Assembly: GCA_010909165.1 (NCBI GenBank)
Contig: MU008190.1
Coordinates: 236,024-300,023, forward strand
Direction of reading: 5' to 3'
Length of the DNA stretch: 64,000 nt
Source of the DNA: Anthoceros angustus
Taxonomy: Eukaryota; Plantae; Anthocerotophyta
Positions 11,101-63,995 of this stretch are shown piece after piece; within the stretch, counting starts at the first letter, position 1, and each line of letters begins with the position of its first letter. Position numbers and translations under genes: made by a program. The notes under the pieces are model-generated. The model ran no database searches and was not told where the DNA came from. It was given only the letters and a program-made list of their open reading frames with translations.

Positions 11101-13047
11101 GAGGCTGGAGGCTGGAGGCTGGAACCTGACGAAACCTGGATGCTGGGCCGCAGATCGCTCGCGCGACCAACATTCTGGCTGGCTGGGGCTTCGCTGCCTG
11201 GCCTGCCCAGAGCCCAGAGCCCAGAGCCCGGAGCCCAGAGCCGGCTGCCGGGCCTGGCGAGCGAGAGGCCGTGGGCAGGAATAATAACGGAACGGGCATG
11301 GATAACGGAACGGCGAGCCGGGGCACGGGGCGCGGGGCGCGGGGCCCGGGGCCCGGGATCCGGGGCCGAGGCTGAATGAGGGAATGAGGCTGGCCATATC
11401 CTGTTGCCAGGACGACGGCGCATGATGAGCGTGTAATTTGATGTGGGCTGTGTGCTGGTGGGCCCCGGACCCTGATTTCCAAGCGCGTGGGTTTCTATTC
11501 TGGCTCACGCCACGGTGCGCAATGATTTTTTAAGTCCCTTGGCGGGCCACAAAATGCAGAAAATGAAAAGCGAGGGCAAAAGGCAAGGCTGCACGGCTGC
11601 ACCCGAACCTCCCTGCGTCGTGCCCCACCGCCAGGCGAGCTTTCCTCGCCTCCCGCCTCCCGCCTCGGCTCCCCTTCCCTTCTCCTTTCTGCTTTCTCCA
11701 TGCTCCATTCTCCACTCTCCTTTCTCCACTCTCCTTTCTCCTTTCTCCTTTCTCCAGTCTCCATTTTCCATGATCATGAGCGCGCGCGACCAAGATTTGT
11801 GCGCTTTTGCTCTCCACCCAATGACCCACATGCATACATATATATACATATGTACATACATGCATCTGCAGGCTGCAGGCTGCAGGCCCCAGGCCCCAGG
11901 CCCCAGCCCCCAGGCTCCAGCCTCCAGGCCAGTATGTGCAACCGCAAGTACATCCCACATAATAACATGGGCATGACACGAGCGGTGGTGGTGGTGGTGG
12001 TGGTGGTAGTCGTGGTGGTGGTGGTGGTGGTGCTATGTGCATGGGGCCAGGAGGTATGGAGGGCGAAATGATGATGCATGGCACAATGATGACGGCCCCT
12101 CCTGGTAGGCTGGTACCCTGGTCTCTGGTATCTGGTATGCGCGCGCGGAAAGGGTAACAAACCGGTCGGTTAAGTCTGTTCCGCCGGGCCATCAGCCATC
12201 AGCGCTTCATCATGAGGGCGCGCGGGGGCCGGGGGCCAGGGAGACCGAGACGAGCGGTCAATGCAAGCAAGGCCACATCTTGGGCTCAGGCTCAGGCCGA
12301 GCGGCCTTTGGCTTTCCCTCCAGCCTGCCAAGCCAAGGCACTCGTGCGAACGCGGGCTTCGCTTGGCTCGCATTTGTCGCACGCTGTCTTTCCCCCTTCC
12401 CTCCCCGCTCCCCGCTCCCGCTCCCGGTTCCGGTTCCGGTTCCGGTCCCCCGTCAACATCGCCCACCTACCGCCGCGTTTAACTTTATCCGCGTCTTAAC
12501 TTCCCCCCTTAATGCCGCGCCATGGATGCATGTATGTACATCCGTGTACCGGACACGCGACACGCTCCGCGCATACCCATCATCATCATGACATGACATG
12601 GCATGGCATGGCATCGCGTCGCATTGCATTCAAGGGACTGCATCGGCACACGCCATGCCCATGTCCATTTTGCACAGAAGCGAGGAAGCGAGGGAGCCAG
12701 GAAGCCAGGAAGCCAGGAAGCGAGGTGCGCGAGCGAGCGGTGGTGTGGGATATGGATCCCTCTAAATCAGCAGGAAGCAGATGCAAATCGCGAGATGGTG
12801 CCCCCCTGCCCCTCATTCCAATCACACTTACACGCCGCGCAAGGGCACTGACGAGACGAGCCTGCTGCGCCTGCGTAGGCGGTCGGCCTTGGCCTGCATT
12901 ATGGGCTGCGGCAGTCCGACTAGAGAGACCAGAGCAGCAGCGGGGCCGGGGCCGGAGCCGGAGCCGGGGCGGAGGAGAGGTCAAGTCGCATTCACTCTAC
13001 CGCAGTCTGTGCCAACCGGATTGGATGTGGTGGAAGGAGCAGAGCAA

Positions 13048-13078
<31 letters not shown>

Positions 13079-13975
13079 CGCAGGGAGAAGGGGGCCCGGG
13101 CCCCTGGCCCCGGCGCCCAGGGCACACCCAGACTGTATGTACCACACAGCGTCCAGAGGCGAGAGCAGAGCAGAGCATCCAGCGGTGGCAGGACCGAGTA
13201 CCGCGACAGCTGCATCCACGGAACGGATCCCGGGCCCCTAAATCTGGAGCTGCCTGCACAAGCGCAATTACCACATCCTGTACCAGGAATTCAAAAAACT
13301 GGGAGCGACCTTGTCTCTGCGACGCAATTACACTTCCCCTCACACTTCCCGTACCAGTACCGACACAAGGCGGGGCTCAGCTCTGCTCGACTACTCTTGC
13401 CTACTGCACTCTACTCTACTGCGCAAAGCCCGAAAACATACATACATACATACATACATCCATACATAGGACCCAAGAACTGAAGAAATCCACGGCAAGG
13501 CATGGCCGACGGCTGCCGCTGCTCGCCCACTGACAGGACAGGCTACAGCCCAGCCAGTAGGAGTACTAGTGGTCAAGTCCCCTTCACCACACACAACAGG
13601 CAGACAGACCAGAAGAACAAAGCAGACAGCAGCACAGAGCAGCAGAGCAGCAGAGCTGCAGAGCAGCAGAGCACGGTCTTCCAGCTATAAATGTCAGCTC
13701 AAGTGTGCGAACCAACATGTGGACCACTGCCGAGGCCTCCCAACCGGCCCGCCTCAGCCCCAGCTCCAGCCCCAGCCCCAGCCCCGCCTTCGCCCCGCCC
13801 CAGCCCCTGGCCGCGGCCCCGGCCCCGCCCTATTTTGTCTTCTTTTCCCATTTTCGAACTCTCTTCCCTTCTCATTCTACCGCCTCCGGCTAGGCTACCC
13901 TCTGCCCCTGCCTTCCATGCTTTCTTCGTATAGCCATGGCGTCCCAAACGACTCGAGTGCAAACAGGAAATACTA
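8200..13975. repeat. GC-rich, microsatellite-dense non-coding stretch ((GT)n, (GGT)n, (GCAGA)n, (CAGGAG)n, (CATA)n, (CCTGGC)n etc.)
   Basis: For example (GT)n about 9037-9066, (TGTAGC)n about 9891-9913, (GGT)n 11984-12032, (CATA)n about 13436-13466. ORFs here are low-complexity translations of SSRs. Confidence 0.8.
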
Positions 13976-14703
13976 ATGCATGCCAATATACCTAAGTTAG
14001 TTTTAATATACATCTATATTCATCTTTTAAAAATAATAGATAAACTAACTTTAAAACAATATAGGTTACTAAAATCATTATCATCCTTCTTTTCTTAGAT
14101 AGAAAAATAAGCTTTGTTTTTTTTTTACAAAATTGCTATGAGAAAAGATTGTGATCATTGTTTTGAATTCAAGTTCATTTCAAAAACAAAACAAGGCTTA
14201 CATTTATCAAAGAACTTGATTTTAATTTAATAAATTATCAAAATTAATATATTATATTATATTGATGTACTACTCACACTCATTACTTTCAACTTAGATC
14301 ACTTCAAACTAGAATATGATTGAGTGCTATCTTCACAAGCTTCTTATGCAAGGCTTAAGTTGAAATTCATAGAGTCATATCACCATCAGTAAGCATTACT
14401 CATCAGAACAAGCCAACCTTCATCGCAATTGAACATAGAGGATGCAACATCATGCTTTAGCATAGAAACTCATCAATGTTTAATTGTTTTTTGTGGGTTT
14501 CAATAAAACGATACAACCTAATTACGACATATTTTGATAACAATGTGCTCTACCAAGTATACTAGTTTTAGGTGATGAGACTACATTCAACAACTCGCAA
14601 CAAACTTACATTGAACTATACAACATTCTTATTCAATCTTATGATATGTGGAATCCTTCCAAGTCAACAACGACAGGGAGGATAATACCCACACCGAGCT
14701 ATC

Positions 14704-16452
14704 ATGGGATGTGCTCCTTCAACTTTTGTCACTCCCTTCTTTCCTTTTCAATCTTCAAATTTAAGCAAAAACAAAGCATGGGCAACTCAAGATACTCGCA
14801 AATACATGACCACAACGACTAATTGTATAAGAACCCAAAACATGTGTTGTCAACTAGATTCGCATCGAACCATTGATGCTTTAGCACTCAAGCCAAATGT
14901 CGCCATCGTCGGTTTACGGGCCACTTGGATAACACCATTTCTGCTTGCCATGTGTCACCCTTGTGATGTTTTAGTGGCAAAATATAACATCATTAACCAA
15001 TTTCAAGAAAGTAAAATTGTTGCTCTAGTGAATTTACAAGTTCCTGGTGAACATTCATTATGCAGGACTTCACATGTCAAACGAGATAGTGGTTTTACTT
15101 ACACACCAGAGTTGTTCATGCAAAGCAATATCCAATATTACAACTTTCCATGGATGAAGGAGAAAACACGCAACCTAGATTACACTTTGTCCATTATCCA
15201 AATTGTGGATTCTAGGGTTTGCAATGGAGGGAAGGTGGCAATTCATTCTTATTCAGGTCGCCGACGTAGTGTGTTGATTATTGCATGTTACTTAGTATTT
15301 TCTCAAAAATGTAGTGCCCTTGAGGCTGTGGATTTGGTGCACAAGACAAAACCTAAGTTTATAACTTCAAGTCAGCTGAAACATGTCAGGTTGTTTGAAA
15401 AGTATTTGTCAAACTTGAGGTATGTCTTTGAGCAGCCCTCAAAGCCTCTCAAAATTCATAAAAAGAATAAATTCCAATCACTAGAAAGTTTCATGGAAAA
15501 ACAAAGAAAAATTTTACATGGAGAAGAAATTCGGATTTTCTATAACACACCTAAAATCTTACATTGTGTGATAAAAGAATCAGTACAAAGGGCAAGCCAA
15601 TATAAAAAAAATAGAGAGAAATTGGCACGAGCTTTTCTCCATGAGCTTGAGTATGAGGTTGGAAGCGAAGTAAACCCTATTCTTGAGGAAGATGCCGCTA
15701 TAATCCTGAGAATAAAACGTAATATGGATAGTGGTGATTATAGTGGTTTGCAACATCTTGAGATACATAATCTTTTAAGACTAATCCTTGACTGGATCTC
15801 TTTGCTAAGACAACCAATTGTTCCTGACTGGATTCTCACTACTGCATTGAGCAAAGGAGAGATATTGAGCTCCATTACCGAGCTTCAAAAATGTACTAAA
15901 TCTGCATTTGCAACCTTTCAAATTTTGGCTTGTTGGATGTATCAAATTGTGCCTAGTAAAGCACGTCTCACTCGAAGACTTTATGGGGGACTTGCTCATA
16001 TTCTCCTAAGGCACACAGGCTTACATAATTTGCCAGAAAGTAAGATCATCCCTATTATTCAAAAAAGGCCTTCTAAAATGAAAGAAAGATTTTCCATTAT
16101 ATCAAAGGTAACACAAGGTATCACTAGGTTCAAACCAACCATTCTAGAAGTAGAATTTGGTCTACTATTGGAGGCAACAGCTCGCCACTGGTGTAAATTG
16201 GGTACGTCAAGCATACCAAGTTCTAAAGCAAGCACTAGTGGACTAGCTGCTCTATCATCGGCCCCAAACACATGCAATCACGGACCAAAAATTTATTTAT
16301 CAAAAACACTTAATGTATCATATATTATCTATGTAGAACCTTTGTTGTTAAATCGGCCTAGCTTAGATGTTGAGCCATTAAATGAAGAGTTGATTAAAAA
16401 CTTGGAGAGAACTTCTTCCATAGGCAATAAAAAAAGCTCATTATGGCCATAG
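14704..16452 (+). CDS. PTPDC1: PTPDC1-like protein tyrosine phosphatase domain protein, predicted catalytically dead (C to S), intronless, 582 aa
   Basis: ITPFLLAMCHP..KYNIINQF..NLQVPGEH..CR..DSGFTYTPELFMQ..YYNFPW..GKVAIHSYSGRRRSVLIIACYLVF parallels human PTPDC1 (ITDNILAMARP..NLQRPGEHASCG..ESGFTYLPEAFM..GKVAIHCHAGLGRTGVLIACYLVF). LDWISLLRQPIV resembles the PTPDC1 C-terminal WLEQLKEPV block. Confidence 0.85.
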   Translation: MGCAPSTFVTPFFPFQSSNLSKNKAWATQDTRKYMTTTTNCIRTQNMCCQLDSHRTIDALALKPNVAIVGLRATWITPFLLAMCHPCDVLVAKYNIINQFQESKIVALVNLQVPGEHSLCRTSHVKRDSGFTYTPELFMQSNIQYYNFPWMKEKTRNLDYTLSIIQIVDSRVCNGGKVAIHSYSGRRRSVLIIACYLVFSQKCSALEAVDLVHKTKPKFITSSQLKHVRLFEKYLSNLRYVFEQPSKPLKIHKKNKFQSLESFMEKQRKILHGEEIRIFYNTPKILHCVIKESVQRASQYKKNREKLARAFLHELEYEVGSEVNPILEEDAAIILRIKRNMDSGDYSGLQHLEIHNLLRLILDWISLLRQPIVPDWILTTALSKGEILSSITELQKCTKSAFATFQILACWMYQIVPSKARLTRRLYGGLAHILLRHTGLHNLPESKIIPIIQKRPSKMKERFSIISKVTQGITRFKPTILEVEFGLLLEATARHWCKLGTSSIPSSKASTSGLAALSSAPNTCNHGPKIYLSKTLNVSYIIYVEPLLLNRPSLDVEPLNEELIKNLERTSSIGNKKSSLWP

Positions 16453-19400
16453 CGCTGTAGAGCAGAGATATTTTAATCAAATAATTATTATTATAGGTAC
16501 TTATTGCCAAAGAGTATTTTGAATACATTAATAGTACATCGTTCTACTAAATTAATAGTATTATGTTTGCATGTTAAAACAAATGGTTCCACGTTTTAGG
16601 TCATAGACACACATACATGGGAGGCCATCGGGTACATTGACGGCAACCTCTAGCCTCTCAACCTCACGCTAGCGCCGACAACATCCACCAATTGATATTT
16701 TTTGCTACCGTATATCCGACCGTGGCTGACATCCAAGACAACAGTTGAGAGAATTTAGTGCACACGCTTGGATACCATGTACCACGCTGCGCTTCACCTA
16801 CCGAGTTGGTCAATGTTTGATGTTTGTTTCACGACTCTCTTTTTATGTTCGTCCTTTGGTTTTCAAACTTATTTCTTACATATTTGATTCAAGACTCACT
16901 TATGTTTCGAATATGACCTCATAGGTCACTTCATTGAAAGAGGAGAGATGAGGTGAACCTATCTTACTTCTATTCGTCCTTTAACTTATTTATGTTTGTC
17001 CTTTGCTTTTTGTACTCAAGGACACTCGTGGTATAGTTAGAGCTTACGTGTACTTGTCCTATGGTTGCTTACTTATACTTGTCTTATGGTTTTTGAATTA
17101 TGTGGTATAAGGAACTCACTCATGACTTTTATTTTCTTTGGGAGTCTTCGTTCGAACTCACTTGTAAGGTCGTTTATTTGTAAGAGCTTTGTAAGTTTTA
17201 GTGGAAAGCTTTGAAAGTTGCTATTCTACTCATGAGAGCCTCGAGAGAAGAGTGGTTTATCTTGCATGGGAGAAGGGTAGGAAAAGGGGCCACTCAGGAA
17301 AGGCATTTTGTGTGAGGAAGTTAAGTTGTATTGGTTAATAATTAGGTGTTATCTTTTTGTTAAGTGGAGGGTTGCACCCCATGACCTGAAATGCACTAGG
17401 GAATTGGCGCGTCAACTTTGCAAAGATGCTGATGAGAGGAGGTGGCTGGAGGTGAAGCCCTCGGCCGAGGTGGAGGAGGAGGTGGATCCATTGGTGAGGA
17501 TCCTAAGTCCCTCTCCGGCTTGCCTTAGTCCCTATGGCGTGCAAGCCGGAGAGAGAGAGAGAGAGGAACGAGGAGAGTGTTGCTGTTGTGGGTTGCAGGC
17601 AGAGAGAGCCAAGTCCCAATGTCCAAAGCAGAGAGGTTACAACTTCCGGGAGGCGAGCAGATGCCGTTAAACTCTTCCATGCTCCACAGCCTGGAGGGAG
17701 AGCAGGAGCAGGAGCAGGAGCAGTGCGAGAGTGAGAGAGAGTGGAGTGACTAGAGTCCAGTTGCGCTGGACACGCAGCGAGAGCAGGCTCCACGTTGTTC
17801 AGTCCCCACCCTCCTCTCTCTCTTTCCCAAAGCTGGTCTGCTGCTACGGCTTGCTGCTAACAGCTTCTTCCTTCCCTCGCTGCCCCAGAGAAAGCCCAAG
17901 CCCGGTGCCCAGTCCCCGGGCGCCTCGTGGACGGAGCCCCCTCCTGCTGCACACACTCTGGGCTGCGCGCGGACGGGACGGGACGGGTCAGGTGCGTGAC
18001 CTCGGTTAGCTTGCTGCTGCTTTCACACCGCCTCACCCCTGCTGCCTGCTTCCGCTTCGTACTTGTGGCCTACCACTTACCACTTCCCACTACACTACTT
18101 GGCTGGCTTTGCCCTCTGCCTCCTCCCCGGAGTCTAATCGGGTAGCTCCGCAGAGCAAATCAGGCAGACCCACCGCCTGTTTGTCCCAGCTCCAGCACCC
18201 AGCCTCCTTCCTTGCCTTCCCTCCCCCTCCTCTTTCCGGTTTCAAATCTTTGCTGGCTGCCTCTGCAGCAGCAGCTGCTGCTGCACCTGCACCTGCACCT
18301 GAACCTGCACCTGTCCCTGCCCCTGCCCCTGCCTCTACCCCTACCCCTACCCCTGCCCCTGCCCCTGCCCCGCCCCTGCCCCTGCCCCTGCGCGCTCGCA
18401 TCTGCATCTGCCCTCCGCTCCGCCCAGGAAGCTCCCGGAGCTGCCACTAATTCGGAGCCCAGGCGGAGGCCCAGGCGGGAGATCCCACATTTGTGCTCGC
18501 CGGGGCGGCCTCTGCCCACCAGCTCGCTGCTTCGCTTCGCTTGGCTTCTTGCTGGTACCACCACCCTCAACTGCCCTGCTTGCCCCGCTTCTTGGCCCGA
18601 TCCCGGATCCGATGGCTAATTGCCACCCGCCCTCTATGCCGCTGCAATTCATGGCTCCGCATCCTTAGTTCAATTTCCTCCTCCCTCCGCGCATGCGCAC
18701 TCCCTAGATCTCTCTCTCCGCCGGGCTCTGCTCCTGCCACTGCCCGCTCTTTCCTCTTCTTGGCCTGCCTGCCTTGCCTGGCCTGGCCTTGCATGGTGGG
18801 CGTGCGGGGTTTGGCTGCACCCGGGATTGCGATTCTCCTGCGCGACTGCTGTTAGCGGACTGGACAGACTGTGTTTCTGCAAATCTTTATGCTCAGCCTC
18901 TTTGCTTTCGTCTGGCTCGCACCCTCAGTCTATCTGTGCCCGTGAGTGTGTGTGTGTCTCTGACGTTTGCAGCTTCTTGTTTTCCTTTCCTCCCCTTTCC
19001 TGTGTGGTGGGTTCCGGTGAAGGCCCATCCACCGCATGCCCTGCAAGCCTCCAGGCCTGGCCTGGATAGCAGCGTAGGGTTTGAGCGCCTTCTTGGAGCG
19101 GACTTCCGTGAGTGGCATGGAAATTTTTTTTGGGATGTGCTGCGGTATTTTTAGTTGCTGGGGAAAGCTGTTCGAAGCGGACGGGGAAGCGGAGCAAGGG
19201 CTTTTGTGCTCCCACATTTTTGTGAAAGAATTGGATTGCTACAGGCCTGCGCTTGTCAATCCTTTGTGACTGTGACTGCACTCCGCTCACCGCTGCCTCC
19301 GGATTCCAACTCCTGCTCTCCAGATTGGGCCTGCCCAGTTCTGTCCAGCCCAGCCCAGCCCAGGGCGGTGATGCTGCTGCTGCTGCTCTGCTCTTTCTTG

Positions 19401-43925: not shown

Positions 43926-45671
43926 TCAGTCCTGGCCATCTTCTTCTCCAGCGAGACTGGCAGTCTGTGAATCCACACTGCTGGCAGCTTCCTTCAATGC
44001 TCGGGATAGTGCACTGGGTGATGGCGGAGTTGCACTCTGATGGCTTCGGGCAGGCCTAGGAGACACTTCGCGTGGAGATCCACTTGCTCCGTCCCCAAGG
44101 CCAACCGCTTCTGGAGTGACGTCTTTTGAGGGCCGACGTCCGTTCAAAGCATGACAGTGAGGGCAGTAGTACGTGATGTACGGGAAATCTTCCTTCTTTG
44201 CAAGCCCTGAGAGACAGAAAACATTCCACCAACATGAGCCTGAGTGAAGCTTCAGGAATGAATCCGGACAATTAAATAGCATCTAACACGTAAGACAAGG
44301 CCATAAGGTTGCCTTCAAGCGAAGTCTACCATTGTGCATGAGGCAATTCTTGCAAATGAGAGCGTAGCACTGACTGGGATCTTCCCCGACAAGCATTGCT
44401 GCAAAACGAGCCATCCAACCTCCTCCGCTTCCACGTTCTTTGTTCAGCTGCATCTCTCCATCATCCAGAAAGGAATTCGTGGAGCCTTCATCATAGCCTG
44501 CTTCTTGAGGATAACTTCCTGCATACCTATCCGCCAACGTGAATTGATTAGCCTCTGCCTGGTCAAGTCTCGGACCCCTTCTCCTCCTCAGGCCAGAAGG
44601 ATCTGTGGTTCCCGCATCATGTCCCTTGCCCACTCTGGGAGACTTATTCCCATTCCGTTGGGCTTCTTCCTCGTGAGGTTGAAAAGCAAGCTTCAAACCG
44701 GATTCTACCCCAATCTTGGAAGCTAAAATAGTTGCTGCTGCTGCTTTGGCTGCTGGGTCGGAATCATATTGCTGACAAAGGAAGCAAGGGATCAGTTCAA
44801 AGCAGCAAACGTAGCTGCCCAAGTGCCATGATATCCGTTTTCATTGTCGTTAGGAAAGAGCAGAGATTGAAAAGTCAGTCGATAAGCACACCTGAATGAG
44901 TTGTTGTAAAGCATAATAGTTTGTCTTCTCTTTCAACTCATCAATTTTTGCTTGCCGCTCAGCTTTCAGTCGCTCCAGTGTGTTCTGATCCTTGCGCTCA
45001 CCTGCAGAGACAGAGAGGTTAATTTCTCCAGCAGACATGCACAGAAATGAAACCTAGATGCAAGCAGCATCTCGATGATTCAGTGTCCAAACTTCCATTG
45101 CAAAGGGGGGTGTAGCCTCAACAATTATACTTCATTCAGATTTGTTTGAGAAACACCTACAGAACAAACAAAGATGAGCAGATACGAGGGGAAGTGAGAC
45201 TCACGCATTCTGTAGAATCTTGCCAACCCAGAATAAACCAACGACACAAGGACTGGTAGTGCAAAACTAGGCAACACCCTCATTCCCCGGATTTTCCATG
45301 GCAGGTCCGGAGACCTTGTTGTCCATATTGCAAAACCTAGTAACAAAATCTGCCATTCCATGTTAACCTTGCCAAAGTAGAGAATTTGACGATCCCACGG
45401 CAGGACAGGAAGCACATAACCCCACCTCAATGACGATGGAGTAGACAAGAAGACCCCTGGCCAACTTTGCCCATGTCCGGGTCCGCCTCTTGAGACGAGC
45501 AAGAACAGCCCTTTCCTCCTGAGACAGATGCTGTAACCTCTTCTCAAAGTCACTGTTGCTGCTCCTCGAAAAGAGACCAAAGAATCGGCTCAAAACTCCT
45601 CTCCGGGGCTGGGGAGCCGGCGATTTCTGTTCAGATGGCGTCGGCCCCTGGGAGTTCCCTTTGTCACCCAT
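43926..45671 (-). CDS. LNP: Lunapark ER-junction protein (TM segments plus zinc ribbon)
   Basis: DFEKRLQHLSQEE, ERLKAERQAKIDELKEKTNYYALQQLIQ, YDSDPAAKAAAATILASKIG, and zinc ribbon LICKNCLMHNG / YYCPHCHALNG. Confidence 0.92.
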
Positions 45672-46470
45672 GTTGCCTCCGCTGAACTGCGAGAATTCGG
45701 ATGCGAGCTTCATTACCTCGAACTACATTTACGATCTAGAGTCGAAATGAATCGGCAAAGCCCCTCAGGTGTACCTTGAAACAAGCGACCGGATCAGATC
45801 AGCTGCCCACAGCAGTCAAGCATCGGCCCGCACCTGCGGTCGTCGGTCTCCCTTCCGCACTAGCTCCGGGCCCGCATCAGATCGGGTGCCCCGGGGCCCT
45901 GCCTGACTGAACCCAACTAGGCCCCGCCCCGTGAAGCTCGCCTCAACAGCATTGTCTGTGTCCTGGGGATCCGCAACCACGACCCGGAGATATTCCCCCC
46001 TCCGAATCTCAAAGCCTGAGAGCCCAATTCTAACCGGCCCCAATCGGGCACCGGTCACACGACGAGACGCGACAGTGCCGAGACAAGACCAAGGATCAAG
46101 GCGCGACAGCTCGCCCACTGGCTTGGGTGGTTTGGTGTGAAGAGGGTTAGATCGAACCAGCCTAGATGGAAAGCTCTACAATTGTGCGACAACGGCCAGG
46201 GGTGGCTCATCGGCCAGGTGCCGCTACCCGCATTGTAGAGCGTGGCAAACGCCTGTTATCCCTCTATACCGTGCTAGGGTTGTGCCTCACGTCGTAGGCG
46301 GCGAAACTGGCGAAACCAGTTCCCGCCATTTCTGCCGGTTTGAGAGTTCCGGCGTCCTGCTCGGGCGCTTTGGTTTTGCGGACATTGCGCTGTGCTGTGG
46401 AGGAATCTGCTGGAGCTGGATGTTTTTTTGTTAGAATTCGGAGATCGTTGGGAGGAGGTGGCCGGGCAGG

Positions 46471-48709
46471 ATGTCGCTCACGTTTCCCACTTTGTCGACT
46501 AAGAACATTGTGGAGTTCCTTGTTGAAGGCGGCTATGCAATTGGAGAGCAGGATCTGTTGAAGCCAACCCGGGATGGCATGTGGCCGCTGTACGAGTATC
46601 TGATGCAGTATCTCATGGGCATTTCGAGGTGAAATCTGTTGTGGTGCTTGTCGCTTGTTGGAAAATGGAGAGCAATGCATGACGAGGTGCTGCAGTGTAC
46701 GGTTTGGTGCAGGGAAGAGCTTCAGCAACCTGTTTTCAGCGCCTTGGAGCATCTGGAATTCGCAGAGCTGCATGAAGATTCAGTGGGCTGCCTGGCGTCT
46801 TTCCGCAATATGGCACAGCTGATGCAGACTTGCAATGTTCCCAATTTCTCTATGAATGACATCATCAAGCCGGACCCCGACAGAACCATCCACAACCTCA
46901 GTGCCATCATCAACTTTGCCAAGTTCAAGTATGTCTCTGTGTTGACTGCCCCCACTTGGCTTGGTTCATCTGATTGAACGATAAGTCTGACATGGTTCGC
47001 TGTTATCTGGCACCAGAGAAGAGAGAGACCGGAAATTGTCTGAGCTCACGAATCGGAAGGACAAGCTGCTGGAGCTGAGAGAACAAGCTCAGATGAATGC
47101 AGCTCGGGTACCCAGTCTACCAAGTGAGGTTTTGGATTGCAGGCTTCGTGAGTGCCGTTGGCCTAATGCTTGTGCTGTTCTCTAGGTGAAGGCCCAGGTG
47201 CAAGCACTCCAAACAGCCAGGCTAGCCGAGCAGCCTGCTGTGCTGGCACTCCAGGATGAAATCAAACAGATGAAACAACAGATTGTCGGATACAACAAGC
47301 AGCATGCTGCCTTGCGTACAGAACAGCGTGGCCTGAAAGAGGAGTATACCAATATCTCAGATCAGGTAGGCATACTTGAACAGCTTTCCAACTATTGTTA
47401 GCTCATTTTACTACCGCTACCAACAAGGTCGCCTACTTTATCTGCATCTGACTTCCTTCAATGGTGTTGGCTTCGGCGGCAAACTGATATCTCTCATTCC
47501 ACAGATATCGCACGAGAAGTTCTTAATCTCTCAAGCCAAACAATTGAATGCAGATCTGAAAGGACAGATCGTTCAGTCTCCTGAAAAGTTGCAGGTGCTG
47601 TTCTTAGTATTGTCGTGAAGCCCACCTCAACAGTTGGGGGTGCAATACTTCTTGATTGATGCCGTCTTGTTGCAGAAACTGGTGGAGGAAAAACAACAGA
47701 GTCTGGAGAACGCCAAGAAGTACGTCGAGGAAAGGAGGTTATCTGTACGATCATTGAAGAAGAAGCAAGAAGCTTATGGAAAGGTATCAAAAGACGACCA
47801 AGGTCTCCTTCCTTAGAGCGCTTCCTCTCGTGCATAATGATCAACAGCATGCACTCCGGATGTGCAGGCGGAAGAGAAAGTCAAGAAATGTGTGGCCATG
47901 TTGAATGAGTACGAGAAACAGGTAGCCAAGTGTTCACCTTTACGAGTTGGCCGAGTCACCGTGGGCATTTTGTTGAACCGCAATTGCTTGACTTGCAGAC
48001 GACAGAGCAAAAGCAGGTATCCAAGGAAGTGAAGGCGCTCAAAGCCAAGGTGAAGGAATGTGAGAAAGAAAGGCGGGGCCTCGAGACTAGGTTGGCACAG
48101 TCTAGGCTGGAAGGTAACCATCGATAGGCCTAGTATGATCTGCTGAAAGTATAGGCTATCTGAGGTTCTTTGGGTCTGTTATGACGCAGGTCAGCATTTA
48201 ATGGAGCAGGCGGAGAAGTCTGGACGGCAGGCAGCATTGAAGCTTTCAGAAGCACACGGGGAATTGCAAACCTGCTTAGCAGAAAACACCCCTCTTCTCA
48301 CGAACCTAACAGCAAGGATTGCCCAGATGTCAAAATTGTCTGACACTCAGGTATGCCCTAGTTCACTGTATTCCTCGTTTCCTCCGTTATACCAAGTTCC
48401 TTGACTGTACGGGAGGCACCCCGAGTATGTCCTTTGGTGAGATCAATAGCTGTTATGTCGTCCCAGAATCATCAGTTGGCTCAGAAGCTTGCACAAGCGC
48501 ACGTTAAGAAGGAAGCTGTCCTGTCAGAAGGCGCAGCGGAGATTGCGAGGCTTCAAAACAAGGCAATTCAAAGCTGTTCCATCTTACCATCGTCCTCCGG
48601 GAGTCCCGTTAGATGAGCATGCGTCGTCTAAACTTGCATTGCTGTCTATCTGCAGGTTCGAGCGTACAACAAGGTGGTGATGGAAGAAGCAAGTCGCATT
48701 ACCATTTAG
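46471..48709 (+). CDS. NUF2: Kinetochore protein NUF2 (Ndc80 complex), multi-exon
   Basis: MSLTFPTLSTKNIVEFL..DLLKPT. CH-domain core DIIKPDPDRTIHNLSAIINFAKF. Long coiled coil with IVQSPEKLQ. Last exon VRAYNKVVMEEASRITI*. Confidence 0.9.
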
Positions 48710-56636: not shown

Positions 56637-57672
56637 ACCAACAAAGTATCACTTCATGAGCGCGGAGCTGCCACCACAGTTCACCTGCAGTCGGAATCGA
56701 GAATGTGCAAAAACATTAACCACAAATCCATCAAACAAAAGCCAACAACGAGGAGAGCACTTCACCCCAGCGGAATCCCAGCTGAAATGAAGTCCAACAA
56801 GCAGGCAGCTCCGTAATTCACCGGTACCTACACCGTCCAAAGCAGGCGTACTCGCCTACCCGCCTGATGAGAGCTCCGCCCAGACTGCGGCACGGTCTAA
56901 TTCAGACAAGGCGATGGCGGGAAGTCCACGAAATTAACCCTAAAACCTGATCACGATCCAAATGCATTACTTTTATGCCGTCCCCGTTATCGGACTGTGT
57001 TTGTACGCAGGTACATACTTTATGGAGCACAGGTTTCCTGTGCCATCCTGAAATTCGTCCTCAGAGTGGACTTCAATCAAATTCTCTTCTCCTTCTGGAA
57101 ACAGCAATATGCAGTATGTAGTTCGAATGGCATTGAGATTCAGCTGACCCAGACACCTTGGAACAAACACCTTTGTTCCCTGACTGGTACGGCGAGGGAC
57201 TCCTGTTTCTCTTTGTTGGTAAAGCAGCCACCAAACCAAAGTGCCGCACGGGGCCTACTCAAAACGGGCCGTAAGGCGTACGCAGGGATGCATTGCATGC
57301 ACTTTGCAGTGATGTAGTGAAATCTTTTGAATGTGATAAATTTCATAGCTTACTGAACACTGGGTGGCAGCCCTGGATTGCGAGTTTGCCACATAAACGG
57401 TCTGTGCATTAGTCTACCTCGTGTGTTCTGTTGAGATGAAGGGTGGAGGGAACTTGGACCTTGGACGGGACGCAGGAATGGGATCAGATAACTCGTAACA
57501 AAGGGCAGCAGGAAATACACCCCGTGATCTAGCACAGTAACAGGTACAATATCCTGCAAACCTTATCCGAAATCGACCCCAACTGTCGCGGAAGTCGAGC
57601 GGCGTCTCGAGCGGGCTTTTCACAGCCCCGTAACGCTTCCCGGTTGTGGAACTTGGAAGGCCGGCTGTTGAG

Positions 57673-60600
57673 ATGAATCTCTTGGGTACCCCCCGGGTCT
57701 CGTCTCCTCCTGTTTCATCGTTTCACAATTGCTCGACCCAGAGGATCGTGCTGTCTCGGTACGTGGGGTGGAGGAAAGCGTGCAGTGCAGCTGTCTTTCC
57801 AGGGATCTCAGGACCTGGGGCCGGTGGACTGTTTTGTGGGACTGCAAGGCATCGCCCTCGGCAACCTGGGAAGATTTTTTGGTAACCCAAATTGCTTTGA
57901 GATTCGCCTGAAATGTGTAGTTTTAATTCATTCAGTCATGAGGTTGCAGGAGTGGACGTCAGGTTGTGATTGACCATTCGTGGTGCAGTGTCAGGAATGA
58001 GGAACCCAAAACTCCGAAGACGGAGAGGTCTTTTTTTGATAATGCAAGCAATTTGCTGACAAATCTATTAAGCGGGGGAAGCGTGGGAGGGATGCCCATC
58101 GCTGAGGGGGCGGTGTCGGACTTGTTCGACAGGCCTCTTTTTTACGCCCTTTATGACTGGTTCATCGAAGTAAGCCTCGGCTGAGAGGTGTGAGAGTTTC
58201 AGGATTCTCAGTTGTCCAGACCTGACTTTCGATTGTCATGCAGCACGGCCCAGTGTACAAGCTAGCTTTCGGACCCAAGGCATTCGTGGTTGTATCAGAT
58301 CCTATTGTCGCCCGGCATATACTGCGTGAAAATGCTTTTGGTTATGACAAGGTGTACAGCACTTTTGCTTTTCAAGTTGTGTTTCACACAATCACCTTAT
58401 GAGTTTCGGGCAAGGAAAGCATATCATTGCTCCTTCATGATGCCGTAGTGTTTGCTTCTCAGGGGGTCCTTGCTGACATTCTTGAACCTATTATGGGAAA
58501 AGGGCTTATCCCTGCTGATCTAGAGACATGGAAAGTACGCAGAAGAGGTAACTGCATGCTCACTTTCTTGTTTGAATCCGCACAGTGTGTTACTGATGTC
58601 GGTGACCGTCAAGTTTTCCGCTGTTCTTGTACACTTTTCTGGAGTACTTTCACAGTACTCATTGTTTCTGTTCATGTGACCAGCTATCGTGCCAGGATTC
58701 CATACTGCATACCTGGAGGCAATGGTGCAAGTCTTTGATGACTGTGCAGAGAGGACAGTACAAAAGCTTGAGAAGCTCTTAACTGAAGCTAAGAGCAACG
58801 GCAAAGACTTTGTTGAAGTAGAGATGGAGTCAGAGTTTTCAAGCCTCGCACTAGACATCATTGGATTAAGCGTCTTCAACTACGACTTTGGATCCGTTAC
58901 TCAAGAATCTCCTGTTATTGCGGTACTGATCATAAGCTGTTCCTCTGCCTATTTCTGTCCTGCATTTACACCAGAATGGCTGGCGGCTACTTCACAAATT
59001 TACTTGTGAGGCATGTCGATTCCATGGTTTGATGGAGGTGGTGACATTGGTGACCAGGCTGTATATGGGACCCTGTCTGAGGCAGAACACAGATCAACGT
59101 TTTACATCCCATACTGGAAGTTTCCATTATCACGATGGCTTGTCCCTCGCCAACGGAAGTTTCACAATGACTTGAAAGTTATCAATGATTGTCTCGACGA
59201 CTTAATTCAAAGAGCAAGGGACACCAGACAGGCACGTTACTACAAATTCCCGGCCTTCTCCCTCAAAGTTCGGCTTACATTTGCCAAATTCTCCAGCGTC
59301 TAGACATGGTTTCCCATACTTGAGCTTATTAGTTGATCTGCGTACAGGAGGAAGACATTGAAGCGTTACAACAACGGGATTATTCCAAAGTCAAAGTTCG
59401 TACTTGCATACTTCAACCTGATCATGTACTCGACATTAGTGTTTTCACGGGTGTCTGATTGTTTGAAACGCTATTCCACAGGATGCCAGCTTGTTGCGAT
59501 TCTTGGTCGATATGAGGGGGGAAGATGCAGATGACAAACAGGTTGGTTATCTGTTATATATCTACAGAAGAGGATTTTAGCTTGATGCTTTTGTCTTGGA
59601 GTTTCTCATCAGGTGCTGGTAGCATGTCAGATGAATCGGCCCGTAGACTGTTGTTGGCAATGGTCATTGTCCAATGAGAGAAGAGGTGCTGGGTTCATTG
59701 CAGCTGCGAGATGATCTTATGACAATGCTCATTGCTGGTCACGAAACAACTGCTGCTGTGCTTACTTGGGCTACATACATGTTAGCTCAGGTCAGTCTCT
59801 CTCTCCCTCTATGTCGCTCTCTCTCTCTCTCTCTCGTGATGTTGCACTTAATTTCGATGTTATTCTGAGCAATTACTGATTTTTCTGTCACTTTGCAGAA
59901 TCCTGAGAAGGTAGCCAAAGCGCAAAAGGAGATCGATTCAGTTCTTGGTGGAAGAAGGCCGACTCTTCAAGATCTTAAGAAGTTGCAGTAAGTTCTCCTT
60001 CCTACCTCCTTGCCTTATATGCTGGATCCATGGTATATTTTTTGTGTGTACTGCCTAGCGGCAAGCCATTGCCTCAAAGCACGTGGATACTCAAGACTAA
60101 GACAGTGTGCATGACTTTTGACCTTCACGATGCCCATTGGCAGCACATTCACAAGCTGCAAAGTTTGAAAGGCCTATGCAAGCTTGCTTGACAGTTGATG
60201 GAAGGAATCTCGATATCAGGTTCTGATGTCAGGGTTGTGAGATTCTGGGTCTCAGGTGTCAGGTTGAGATGGATGATAACCAGTCCCTACTTGGAAAGAG
60301 AGTGCAGCGCTTCAGAATCGCACACACCCTACAAGAATCTTTGTGGTATTTTGGAGATATGATTTCCAAATACGCGAAGGTCCTAACAAGTACCCATATT
60401 GACCCGCATGTTGAGTATTGCTGGTCAGCAGCATGTGATGTCCCCCAGGTAGGGTGTAGAAGTCATCCACCAGATCGCAGCTGGAAGAATCATGCCTCAC
60501 CAAAGCCTCGTCTTATTCATACCTTACTAAGAAAGAAGAGGGAGAGAACCCAGAAACGGAAGGTGATGGATGGCTTTGGAATCGCTTCACCTGCCCAAGA

Positions 60601-62505
60601 AGGAATTGTTGCTCGCAACGACGATCTACCGATTTTTTCGTTTGCGGTGATAACAGATGTTCAGTATGCTGACATTCCGGATGGCTTCTCTTTTGGTGGG
60701 GTTCCTCGCTATTACCGCCACAGTCTTGAAGCTCTGGAAAGGGCTGTCGTGCAATGGAACCAGAAGGGAGAGCTTGGTTTTGTTGTACACTGTGGGGATA
60801 TTGTGGATGGCTTTTGTCCAAAGGAAGATGCAATCGGAGCTGTCTCCAGGGTTGTGGCTGCGTTTGACAGGTTCAACGGCAGGGTTTATCATATTCTGGG
60901 AAATCATTGTTTCTACAACTTGCCGAGAACTGAGCTTAACAGCATACTCAACATTCCAGTGTCCGAGGATGGGCGCTCCTACTATGACTTCTGTCCCACA
61001 AGCTCGTTCCGGCTTGTTGTTTTGGATGGTTATGACATCAGCGCCCTTGGTTGGCCAGAAGATCATCCGCATACAGAACTGGCCAATTCCCTGCTTAACA
61101 GTAGGAACCCAAATGAGGAGAAAAACAGTCCAGAAGGGCTTAGTGGAAATGACCGACGGTTTGTGAAGTTCAATGGGGGTGTCAGCTCTGGTCAACTCAA
61201 GTGGCTAGATAGCGTGTTGCAGGAATCCACGTCCCTGAGCCAGAAGGTCATCATCCTATGCCACCTGCCCTTGAACCCCGCAGCTGCCTCCCCAGTTTCA
61301 TTGCTTTGGAACTACGACGAGGTTATGATGGTAATCCACAAATATAAGTGTGTTGTAGCATGTTTAGCAGGTCATGCTCATAGGGGTGGGTATGCCATTG
61401 ACTCGCAAGGGATCCATCACCGAACCTTGGAAGCCGTGCTCGAATGCCCTCCTGGAACTGATGCTTTTGGCCACATAGATGTGTATAATGACCACTTGTC
61501 TCTAGTAGGGGTTGGCCGTATGGCATCCACTGATATGTATTTCCAAACCTGATCAAAGAATCTATTTCACAGTTTGGTCTCTGTGGAGGGCTTGGACAGA
61601 AAGCTTCTGAAGTGTTTTCCAAAAGCTCAGGATTGCCATTCCTGTTAGGTTGAAAGTTGCTTATCAAATGTCCTGGGTGGCTGCTGGTCAGGTACATCCG
61701 ACTGATTGTAGCTGAATCACTTCGGCTGTATCCGCAACCACCACTTCTCATCCGACGGTCTCTGAAGCCCGATACGCTACCTGGTAGGTCCAAACTGTTT
61801 GGAAAGATGCCCCTGTGCTCTCAGAGACTGTTTCAACTAACTGCTTACCATCCTCCACAGGTGGTCATCGAGGGGAACCAAGTGGCTATTTCATCCCTAG
61901 AGGAGCTGATATTTTCATTTCGGTAAGTTTCCTGAATTCCTCCACAGGGCACCCGTCTATGATCATTCGTACCCCGATTCTGAAGCGTTTTGTTCCTCTG
62001 GCAGGTATACAATTTGCACCGGTCTCCATTCTTTTGGAAAAATCCGGAAAAGTTTGAACCAGAGAGATTTGGGGAGGCAAGGATGGATGAAGGTATTTCT
62101 GGATGGGAAGGGTTTGATCCGACCAGAGCTGCAGGATCGTTGTACCCAAATGAGGTAAATCAAGCAGCTAAGCTTATGACATAGAAGATATCGGTGTGAG
62201 AAACGTCAGCGTGGTTCTTGATATCGCATTATGTGCAGGTAATGTCAGACTTTGCGTTCCTGCCATTCGGAGGCGGACCTCGCAAGTGTGTTGGGGACCA
62301 GTTTGCCCTAATGGAATCTACGGTGGGATTGGCAATGCTGTTGCAAAACTACGACGTCGAGTTGAGAGGGTCACCCGAGGATGTGGAGCTGGTCACTGGC
62401 GCCACTCTGCACACCAAAAATGGTATGTGGTGTAAACTGAGAACACGAGGACATGTGAACACGGAGGAAGCCAGTATTCGGGTGCAAGAAGTGTCAGCAC
62501 TTTAG
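57673..62505 (+). CDS. CYP97B: Cytochrome P450 CYP97B (plastid carotenoid hydroxylase family), multi-exon
   Basis: [34 protein letters not shown]-helix [11 protein letters not shown]-helix [16 protein letters not shown], and heme motif [10 protein letters not shown]. First exon (57673-57758) inferred from splice phase. Confidence 0.95.
60566..61552 (+). CDS. ADPRM: Mn-dependent ADP-ribose/CDP-alcohol diphosphatase, intronless, nested in CYP97B intron 59988-61691
   Basis: Metallophosphoesterase motifs [32 protein letters not shown] and AGHAH. Family-specific [23 protein letters not shown] and [15 protein letters not shown]. The frame is open further upstream (ATG 60269). Confidence 0.93.
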   Translation: MDGFGIASPAQEGIVARNDDLPIFSFAVITDVQYADIPDGFSFGGVPRYYRHSLEALERAVVQWNQKGELGFVVHCGDIVDGFCPKEDAIGAVSRVVAAFDRFNGRVYHILGNHCFYNLPRTELNSILNIPVSEDGRSYYDFCPTSSFRLVVLDGYDISALGWPEDHPHTELANSLLNSRNPNEEKNSPEGLSGNDRRFVKFNGGVSSGQLKWLDSVLQESTSLSQKVIILCHLPLNPAAASPVSLLWNYDEVMMVIHKYKCVVACLAGHAHRGGYAIDSQGIHHRTLEAVLECPPGTDAFGHIDVYNDHLSLVGVGRMASTDMYFQT

Positions 62506-62822
62506 TGCGTCTATGGCTTTCGATCTTTCACGTGGGTTGCGACACCCACAGAGGGGAGCCATTAGTGAACTTCGTTTGGAAGACTCGTTTTTCAAAACAG
62601 CTTTTATTTTTTTATTTAAATTTCAAAACTGATGAATTCCTGAACATTTCACATGTCCCACAAGTTAGTTGAGCAACCATGCATTTTATAAAAACTTAAC
62701 AACTATGAACTACTATTGTATTAGATTGACGATGTAACTAGTTCTCATTTATGTTATCAATTGAGAAGGTTATGAAGTAATTTTTTTCATACAAGTGGGT
62801 TTCCGAAGATCAATCTTCAAGC

Positions 62823-63296
62823 ATGTTTGTTAAGATTTTCTCTTTGGGTTTTATTATGTGCACACTTGTACTTACATGCATGATGCAAACAATTGAGAAT
62901 GAGAGTGAGATCACTGCTGATACAACTATTGTAGATTCAAAATGTGGGGAAACCATGTTTGCACCCAATAGTGCATATGAACAATTATATCATCTAATGA
63001 AACAAAGATTGCAAGATAAAGCCTCTGATAGGTTCCCTCTAATAGGTGAAACGCGTAATTTCCCTTTTGAGGAGATTTATGGAGAGATCCATTATCGTGC
63101 TTCGTGTTCCAAACCATCTACCTCTATGAAAAACAGAGAAGATTGTACAGTATGTATTCTTACACTTAGTACATGGATAGGTGAATCATATTGCCCTTTG
63201 AAGAAGACTGCTCAACTTTATGCCAAAGATTGTTTCATCCGATACTCTGACTCCCCACTACCACGAGAAACCATGAGTCCTTGGAATGAAGACTAA
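62823..63296 (+). CDS. Secreted single-domain DUF26/Gnk2-homologous cysteine-rich protein (157 aa), intronless
   Basis: Hydrophobic signal peptide, C-G-x3-F-x-P-N-S-x-Y start, DCxxC, and terminal C-x6-AQLY-x2-DCFIRYS pattern of the stress-antifungal DUF26 fold. Confidence 0.75.
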   Translation: MFVKIFSLGFIMCTLVLTCMMQTIENESEITADTTIVDSKCGETMFAPNSAYEQLYHLMKQRLQDKASDRFPLIGETRNFPFEEIYGEIHYRASCSKPSTSMKNREDCTVCILTLSTWIGESYCPLKKTAQLYAKDCFIRYSDSPLPRETMSPWNED

Positions 63297-63624
63297 AGGA
63301 TTATAGATATGTTTGAGAAAATACTTAGAAATATGATTATAGTATTGTAACTATTATATATATCTTCTTTAATCAACTTTAATAAATAGTTTTATATGGT
63401 TAATAGATAGAACCTCGTAGGATCAATACTTACCAAATTGTGTGCAACCAAAAATGTGAATAGTTGATGAATAATTAACAAATAAGTATGTCATATGTTC
63501 TTATTTTCATGTTTCCTACTTCCATCCTTCCAACCAAAGTATTTAAGATTCCATGATATACATTTATTTGAGGTGGGAAGTACAAACTTTACGAGTGTTA
63601 GCTCTCACTCATGCAAATGGTTAG

Positions 63625-63810
63625 CCCAAATGAGGTAAATCAAGCAGCTAAACATGACATAGAAGATATCGGTGTGAGAAACGTCAGCGTGGTTCTTGAT
63701 ATCGCATTATGTGCACACTTGTACTTACATGCATGATGCAAACAATTGAGAAGGTTATGAAGTAATTTTTCATACAAGTGGGTTTAGAAGATCAATCTTC
63801 AAGCATGTTT
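63625..63810 (+). repeat. Mosaic of three locally copied segments (from 62145-62237, 62853-62899, 62758-62828)
   Basis: Direct sequence identity to each source, with joins at the shared 10-mers attatgtgca and caattgagaa. Confidence 0.92.
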
Positions 63811-63820
63811 CCTAGCACAT

Positions 63821-63995
63821 GGGAGCTACACTCTTGAGGATAGGACTTTGGTGCCTAGAGGCCTTGGGAGCTACACTCTTGTGAGGATAGGACTTTGGTG
63901 CCTAGAGGCCTTGGGAGCTACACTCTTGTGAGGATAGGACTTTGGTGCCTAGAGGCCTTGGGAGCTACACTCTTGTGAGGATAGGACTTTGGTGC
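63821..63995. repeat. 47-bp minisatellite, about 3.8 copies (GGGAGCTACACTCTTGTGAGGATAGGACTTTGGTGCCTAGAGGCCTT)
   Basis: Units start at 63821 (45 bp, lacks GT), 63866, 63913 and 63960. Confidence 0.95.

Follow-up and report, generated by a model that had tools for sequence, protein, structure and literature searches.

Within a 64,000-nucleotide (nt) stretch of the genome of the hornwort Anthoceros angustus (contig MU008190.1; the whole stretch is referred to here as the window), an uninterrupted gene of the ADPRM (ADPRibase-Mn) metallophosphoesterase family lies inside intron 10 of a CYP97B-type cytochrome P450 gene, on the same strand as its host. The host is spliced across this intron, the guest region is transcribed, and the same nest is present on a second, 18.8-kb genomic contig, L001. 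We conclude that this is probably a stable pair of host and nested gene, in which a working ADPRM has been kept in the sense direction within the CYP97B intron and has its own transcription start. The arrangement is of an ordinary, known kind and this instance of it is new; a literature search returned no report of a CYP97B/ADPRM nest or of nested genes in hornworts. The features of the locus, all on the forward strand (+), are as follows.

57589..62731, +, CYP97B-type cytochrome P450 host gene with 14 exons; transcribed span in same-species RNA contigs
59896..59987, +, CYP97B exon 10, 92 nt, 3′ end ...DLKKL followed by CA; from sequence and spliced contigs
59988..61691, +, CYP97B intron 10, 1704 nt, GTAAGT...CAG (ending ...GGTCAG at 61691), phase 2; splice joint in contigs
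59988..60565, +, 5′ part of intron 10, with several upstream ATGs; not conserved with L001
60227..60565, +, stop-free stretch of 113 codons, in frame and 5′ of the ADPRM ATG; chance about 0.004
60566..61552, +, candidate ADPRM open reading frame (ORF), 328 codons, uninterrupted; from Pfam, structure match, plant homologues and motifs
61553..61691, +, tail between the ADPRM stop and the host acceptor, 139 nt, 55% A+T, without a poly(A)-like hexamer
61692..61782, +, CYP97B exon 11, beginning G followed by TAC ATC CGA (Q/YIR); from sequence and contigs
62257..62295, +, CYP97B heme-binding motif (13 residues), motif coordinates read from sequence
62503..62505, +, CYP97B stop codon

Transcript evidence came from Logan contigs of four runs aligned to window positions 57400–63300 (5901 letters). 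Run X1 is from the same species (100% identity), X2 and X6 are from a second organism (B) and X16 is from a third (C), both approximately 95% identical to the window. The four runs can be taken as RNA, a point on which their records are silent, because their contigs are spliced at every CYP97B intron (GT..AG) and the intergenic DNA beyond the gene is empty: coverage ends at ~57589 and ~62731, with depth below 2 in the edge bins and no contig downstream of ~62,915. The GT..AG joint from 59987 to 61692 was found in X1, X6 and X16, and the host is therefore spliced across the guest. At this joint the CA of exon 10 and the G of exon 11 together form a Gln codon and the reading frame continues. The remaining 12 CYP97B introns are 74–162 nt long, and intron 10 exceeds each of these at least 10.5-fold in length. 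The initial annotation had described this phase-compatible junction, an intron more than ten times the length of its neighbours and, within it, an intact, intronless, same-strand metallophosphoesterase ORF with its metal-ligand motifs; all of this is borne out, the last point by the matches given below. It had also raised an assembly join as a way in which the nest could be spurious. Neither a join nor contamination explains the locus, as four RNA runs from three species and the independent contig L001 agree on it.

Assignment of the host to CYP97B follows from its exons, which were searched one at a time and not as a joined spliced model. They align to the Physcomitrium protein “cytochrome P450 97B2, chloroplastic” (P0271) with 62–74% identity. 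The top full-length representative for a 79-residue exon is the Physcomitrium “P450 97B2, chloroplastic” cluster (75% identity), and a CYP97B exon peptide matches Pfam p450.

Host splicing also varies elsewhere in the gene. At intron 8 (59539–59700), a second acceptor at 59628 is used in place of 59701 in X2 and X16, adding 73 nt and shifting the frame, with a depth equal to or above that of the normal joint; it is absent in X1 and X6.

The guest ORF matches Pfam Metallophos (2e-12) and, over residues 21–321, the zebrafish ADPRibase-Mn structure 2nxf (1.7e-65), the next family reaching just 4e-4. Plant ADPRM proteins align to it with 60–76% identity (E down to 4e-171). The metal-site motifs are all present: DVQ (31–33), GDIVDG (77–82), GNHC (112–115), CHLP (232–235) and GHAH (269–272). 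In the ADPRibase-Mn family the first motif reads D[V/I]Q, with Gln replacing the usual His (PMC4334965), and the guest has D31-V32-Q33 at this position. Its GNHC motif keeps the N and H of GNH[D/E] and has C as the fourth residue, as do the other plant homologues retrieved. Family-specific ADP-ribose-binding residues lie in the s2s3 stretch, where they correspond to human Phe37 and Arg43; in a sequence alignment, guest residues 41–51 pair with the zebrafish s2s3 stretch with one gap, placing an F and an R at plausible positions. These matches assign the guest to the ADPRM family, which hydrolyses ADP-ribose and CDP-alcohols in a Mn2+-dependent manner, and predict an ADP-ribose-cleaving enzyme. 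No characterised plant enzyme of the family was found in a literature search, and an exact database look-up of the 328-residue window product and of a Diphasiastrum protein returned no record for either.

The same-species run yields only four contigs at this locus: spliced exons 1–10 (1367 nt), the spliced junction, spliced exons 11–14 (797 nt) and an intron contig of 1761 nt. The last spans 59961–61721 unbroken, covering the entire ADPRM intron with a depth of 17.8, compared with 25–32 for host exons, although contig depth is not a valid measure of expression level. Intron 10 is the sole CYP97B intron covered in X1, and intergenic DNA is uncovered. The guest region is thus transcribed, a point on which the initial annotation had made its reading depend. 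Genomic-DNA background was considered as a source of the intron coverage and is ruled out for X1, where the intergenic bins are empty and no other intron contig exists. The ends of the 1761-nt contig, 27 and 30 nt inside the flanking exons, are branch points of the graph of 31-letter words from which the contigs derive.

A promoter and 5′ untranslated region (UTR) of the guest presumably lie in 59988..60565. In organism B the contig depth climbs within this part of the intron, from 8.65 to 35.8 in X6 and from 17.9 to 26 in X2, a weak hint of an internal transcription start near 60150–60260. The 5′ part has no further copy within the 64-kb window and no Rfam match. A non-coding RNA was considered for intron 10 as a whole and rejected (no Rfam match at E ≤ 0.1), as was a repeat or transposon source of the intron flanks (no second copy in the window).

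Several observations weigh against a guest with its own transcription unit. The contigs carry no start, strand or 3′ end of a guest RNA; the intron contig runs into both flanking exons, and some or all of its coverage could stem from host transcripts that retain the intron; guest and host contig depths stand in much the same ratio in each of the four runs (0.44–0.75), which also fits dependence on host transcription; and the 139-nt tail after the ADPRM stop holds no recognisable poly(A) signal. Such observations bear on an alternative in which the guest has no terminator, and perhaps no promoter, of its own, so that the ADPRM mRNA ends at the CYP97B poly(A) site at ~62731 and carries exons 11–14 as a long 3′ UTR. 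Neither the window tail nor the corresponding 182-nt tail of L001 has an A-rich signal, and their A+T contents (55% and 52%) fall short of the 71% in the last 120 nt of the host 3′ UTR. Contigs cross the host acceptor unspliced into exon 11 in all four runs, one X2 contig links 60256–61782 to spliced exons 12 and 13, and in X6 and X16 the depth of the downstream exons is approximately the sum of spliced and intron depths. The almost constant depth ratio points the same way, as does an ADPRM gene of Marchantia that also sits in the sense direction inside a host intron.

Other points count against this alternative. Contigs built from 31-letter words do not represent single molecules, and their depths have the limitation stated above. 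One X2 contig retains host intron 13 (62153–62236) with a depth of 23.3, compared with 17.4 for the spliced joint, and the X2 library therefore includes precursor RNA that has not been spliced. An mRNA in which three spliced introns lie beyond the stop codon would normally be a target of nonsense-mediated decay, and in Marchantia the ADPRM stop is ~885 nt away from the following host exon, which leaves room for an end of its own. We therefore consider a shared 3′ end possible but unlikely. If the guest does use the 3′ exons of its host, one transcription unit would serve two enzymes here, which is unusual.

The nest is conserved in a distant relative. The guest's nearest protein in a large database is P0001 (76% amino acid identity), encoded on L001 by an ADPRM ORF (10001–11008) between an exon ending ...DDLKKLQ followed by GTAAGT and an exon starting YIRLIVAE. 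The homologous intron on L001 is 1622 nt long and lies at the same position and in the same phase. Alignment of the two introns gave 55–88% nucleotide identity over the ORF and 7–45% in both non-coding flanks, with a sharp drop at both ORF ends. The initial annotation had proposed a comparison of substitution rates; by the Nei–Gojobori method the two ADPRM genes differ by a dN (nonsynonymous divergence) of 0.157 and a dS (synonymous divergence) of 1.9, which is saturated, giving a dN/dS of 0.08. In organisms B and C every indel falls outside the ADPRM ORF, at 60162 and 61673–61679. These values indicate strong purifying selection on the guest and an old nest.

Upstream of CYP97B, L001 and the window share a collinear neighbouring gene. 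Downstream of CYP97B, L001 positions 12570–17070 (Nuf2-like and Zn-ribbon genes) match window positions 44090–48370, which are upstream of CYP97B and inverted. The two contigs thus carry one orthologous locus with a local rearrangement beside a conserved CYP97B/ADPRM block. In an ADPRM tree, built without the proteins of organisms B and C or any paralogues of this genome, the window and L001 proteins form a clade (support 99) separate from those of mosses, Marchantia and vascular plants, at a basal polytomy of land plants that is not resolved; the tree does not indicate a parent copy. Its placement of the clade fits a hornwort.

A comparison of the equivalent CYP97B junction across plants, which the initial annotation had put forward, found ADPRM in the intron of the window and of L001, and in none of the other plants compared:

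Window: split CA/G, intron 1704 nt, ADPRM present
L001 species: same position and phase, intron 1622 nt, ADPRM present
Physcomitrium patens (L007): split AC/G, intron 293 nt, no ADPRM match
Marchantia paleacea (L009): split CA/G, intron 244 nt, no ADPRM match
Selaginella moellendorffii (L010): split AA/A, intron 51 nt, no ADPRM match
Chara braunii (L008): CYP97B-like gene without introns, no ADPRM match

In all the land plants listed, the intron falls after the second base of the codon preceding Y[IVT][KR]L, and the exon before it is 92 nt in Physcomitrium and the window alike. As a moss, a liverwort and a lycophyte have this intron in the same place and phase but without ADPRM, the gene entered an intron that land plants already possessed, in the window and L001 lineage; the intron position is ancient and the ADPRM insert derived.

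Gene models of some CYP97 relatives showed further peculiarities. The Chara braunii CYP97B-like gene (L008:2001-4319) is annotated as one 772-codon exon, compared with 13–14 introns in land-plant genes. Predicted protein P0183 (1189 residues) joins a CYP97-like P450 domain (344–780) to a phytoene/squalene synthase domain (878–1149); it is a fusion of two enzymes of the carotenoid pathway or, alternatively, the product of a merged gene model. A comparable merger, of an O-fucosyltransferase and CYP97, occurs in the Closterium models P0136 and P0139.

How the guest reached the intron is a separate matter. The initial annotation had taken the intronless ORF as a retroposed ADPRM copy, a same-strand guest that needs a promoter and a poly(A) site within the intron, and suggested that intronic polyadenylation could switch the locus between full-length CYP97B and ADPRM. 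However, one exon encodes the catalytic core of ADPRM in Chara braunii (L005), Marchantia polymorpha (L002), Ceratodon purpureus (L004) and Amborella (L006), a separate exon in Ceratodon holding only an N-terminal extension. With a single-exon core in four other streptophytes, the intronless guest says nothing on retroposition; a single-exon core is the normal, ancestral state of the family in streptophytes. No poly(A) remnant or A-tract was found after the ORF (61553–61691). A single direct repeat, the 10-mer TGCTGGTCAG, brackets the guest, with one copy at 60419 and the other at the host acceptor (61682). By our own estimate (position pairs divided by 4^10), chance alone would yield ~1.7 exact 10-mer repeats over 1.9 kb, and a further 10-mer repeat turned up in the same scan; TGCTGGTCAG was therefore rejected as a convincing target-site duplication. 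Great age could have wiped out both poly(A) and target-site marks, and the duplication may have gone through a DNA or an RNA copy.

The proposed switch has some points in its favour. The guest is on the host strand, and if intron 10 is kept in the message the frame reads Q and then immediately TAA, so that a P450 message truncated before the heme-binding region is possible. Such a mechanism does operate elsewhere, at mouse Mcts2/H13 (PMC13309782). At this locus, however, the tail (55% A+T, without an A-rich hexamer) offers no signal and no contig ends there, nor were loose A-runs seen in the intron, with the limit that contigs cannot show RNA ends; instead, contigs cross the acceptor in four runs. 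The depth of the spliced junction is comparable to that of neighbouring exons in X1, X6 and X16. Together with the ancestral single-exon core, these findings make a retroposed copy that brought in a promoter and a poly(A) site and acts as a polyadenylation switch very unlikely, and this part of the initial annotation is not upheld.

The start of the guest protein has two candidates. Translation from 60566 would give 328 residues; the ATG at 60269, within the open stretch, would give a product of 427 residues, a length like that of moss, Marchantia and Chara proteins. The stretch 60227..60565 is not conserved in L001, whose product begins 7–9 residues upstream of the equivalent of the 60566 ATG. 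The run of 113 stop-free codons is improbable by chance and could alternatively reflect a fusion protein, in which exon 10 of CYP97B would be spliced to an acceptor within the intron and continue in frame into the open sequence upstream of ADPRM. Two X2 contigs overlap by exactly 30 nt at 60256–60285, the signature of a graph merge at 60256, and this position is preceded by AG, one of just 10 in-frame acceptor candidates for the 427-residue frame. Yet no such joint is among the 15 listed of 16, no merge occurs at 60256 in X1, X6 or X16, the stretch lacks conservation in L001 as noted, and the P450 portion of the product would amount to two thirds, with the heme-binding site missing. We regard a fusion as extremely improbable.

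Taken together, we favour a nested gene expressed from within the intron. An ADPRM paralogue with an ancestrally single-exon core would have come into the ancient phase-2 CYP97B intron in the sense direction, in the common ancestor of the window species and the L001 species. It would have been kept as a working enzyme gene since then, the host still being spliced normally across it. Transcription of the guest may begin at its own start in the first ~0.3–0.6 kb of the intron. A guest without introns would add no competing splice sites, and may for this reason be tolerated on the strand of its host.

Copies of parts of the host 3′ region also occur further downstream in the window. Positions 63625–63810 are stitched together from exact copies of CYP97B 3′ segments (62145–62171, 62176–62237 and 62853–62899) and near-copies of 62751–62828, and are followed at 63828–63995 by a 47-nt tandem repeat.

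The locus offers a clean, anciently conserved plant case of a same-strand nested gene. As the host intron is traceable to the land-plant common ancestor, the order of events is polarised: intron first, guest later. There is also a lesson for annotation, in that the absence of introns does not make a gene a retrocopy if the family as a whole has none.

At the protein level, the guest can be compared with vertebrate ADPRibase-Mn (2NXF; human and rat: PMC4334965, PMC3407115). It shares the five metallophosphoesterase motifs, including D[V/I]Q, and aligns over the full length; it differs in having GNHC where the vertebrate enzymes have GNH[D/E].

A parallel to the nest itself is found in Marchantia polymorpha, where ADPRM protein P0089 (L002:7898-12613, AP031342.1; 459 residues) is encoded by a single-exon coding sequence (10001–11380). 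This annotated gene has the same strand as a clathrin-adaptor sigma gene and lies within one of its introns, ~2.6 kb long, between exons ending ...ELDIVYNFNK and starting VHTILDEIVMGG... The host is AP-3 sigma by its best solved relatives (3e-11, compared with 2e-3 for AP-1 and AP-4 sigma). Both nests thus hold a single-exon member of the same family in one long intron of an unrelated housekeeping-type gene. The Marchantia gene differs in its host, a 140-residue N-terminal extension, the ~885 nt from stop to exon (139 nt in the window) and 62% identity to the window protein. None of the ADPRM loci of the window, L001, Ceratodon, Chara or Amborella had AP-3 sigma exons nearby, and the annotations on record show no nesting of the ADPRM genes of Ceratodon, Chara and Amborella.

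With Marchantia ADPRM nested in an unrelated host, the pairing with CYP97B looks incidental. The initial annotation had suggested that the locus couples two pathways; as things stand, carotenoid metabolism and ADP-ribose turnover are linked here by nothing beyond physical position. It is tempting to see bryophyte ADPRM as a habitual “intron lodger”, with copies lodged in the sense direction within introns of genes that are broadly expressed and unrelated to it (AP-3 sigma in Marchantia, CYP97B in this lineage) and perhaps relying on host transcription and the host 3′ end. We think this doubtful; if true, the CYP97B locus would yield two unrelated enzymes from overlapping transcripts with terminal exons and a poly(A) site in common.

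Many animal nested genes are young and fast-evolving. In mouse H13/Mcts2, transcription of the nested Mcts2 causes intronic polyadenylation of the host H13 (PMC13309782). That locus resembles the one described here in having a protein-coding guest within a host intron. In the window, by contrast, no truncated host transcripts and no intronic poly(A) site were found (from contigs only), and there is no sign of a retrogene origin.

Same-strand nested genes are a minority in Drosophila (29%), but 72.5% of them are single-exon, a bias that has been interpreted as the result of selection against interference with splicing (PMC3814207). A family with a single-exon coding core, such as ADPRM, is just the sort that should be able to persist within introns in the sense direction. 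The hornwort locus shares the main features of the Drosophila pairs: a whole intronless guest of unrelated function lies in one host intron, on the strand of the host, which is still spliced. It differs in being a plant case, kept until synonymous sites have saturated (dS ~1.9), and in having a guest that is single-exon by family ancestry and not by retroposition.

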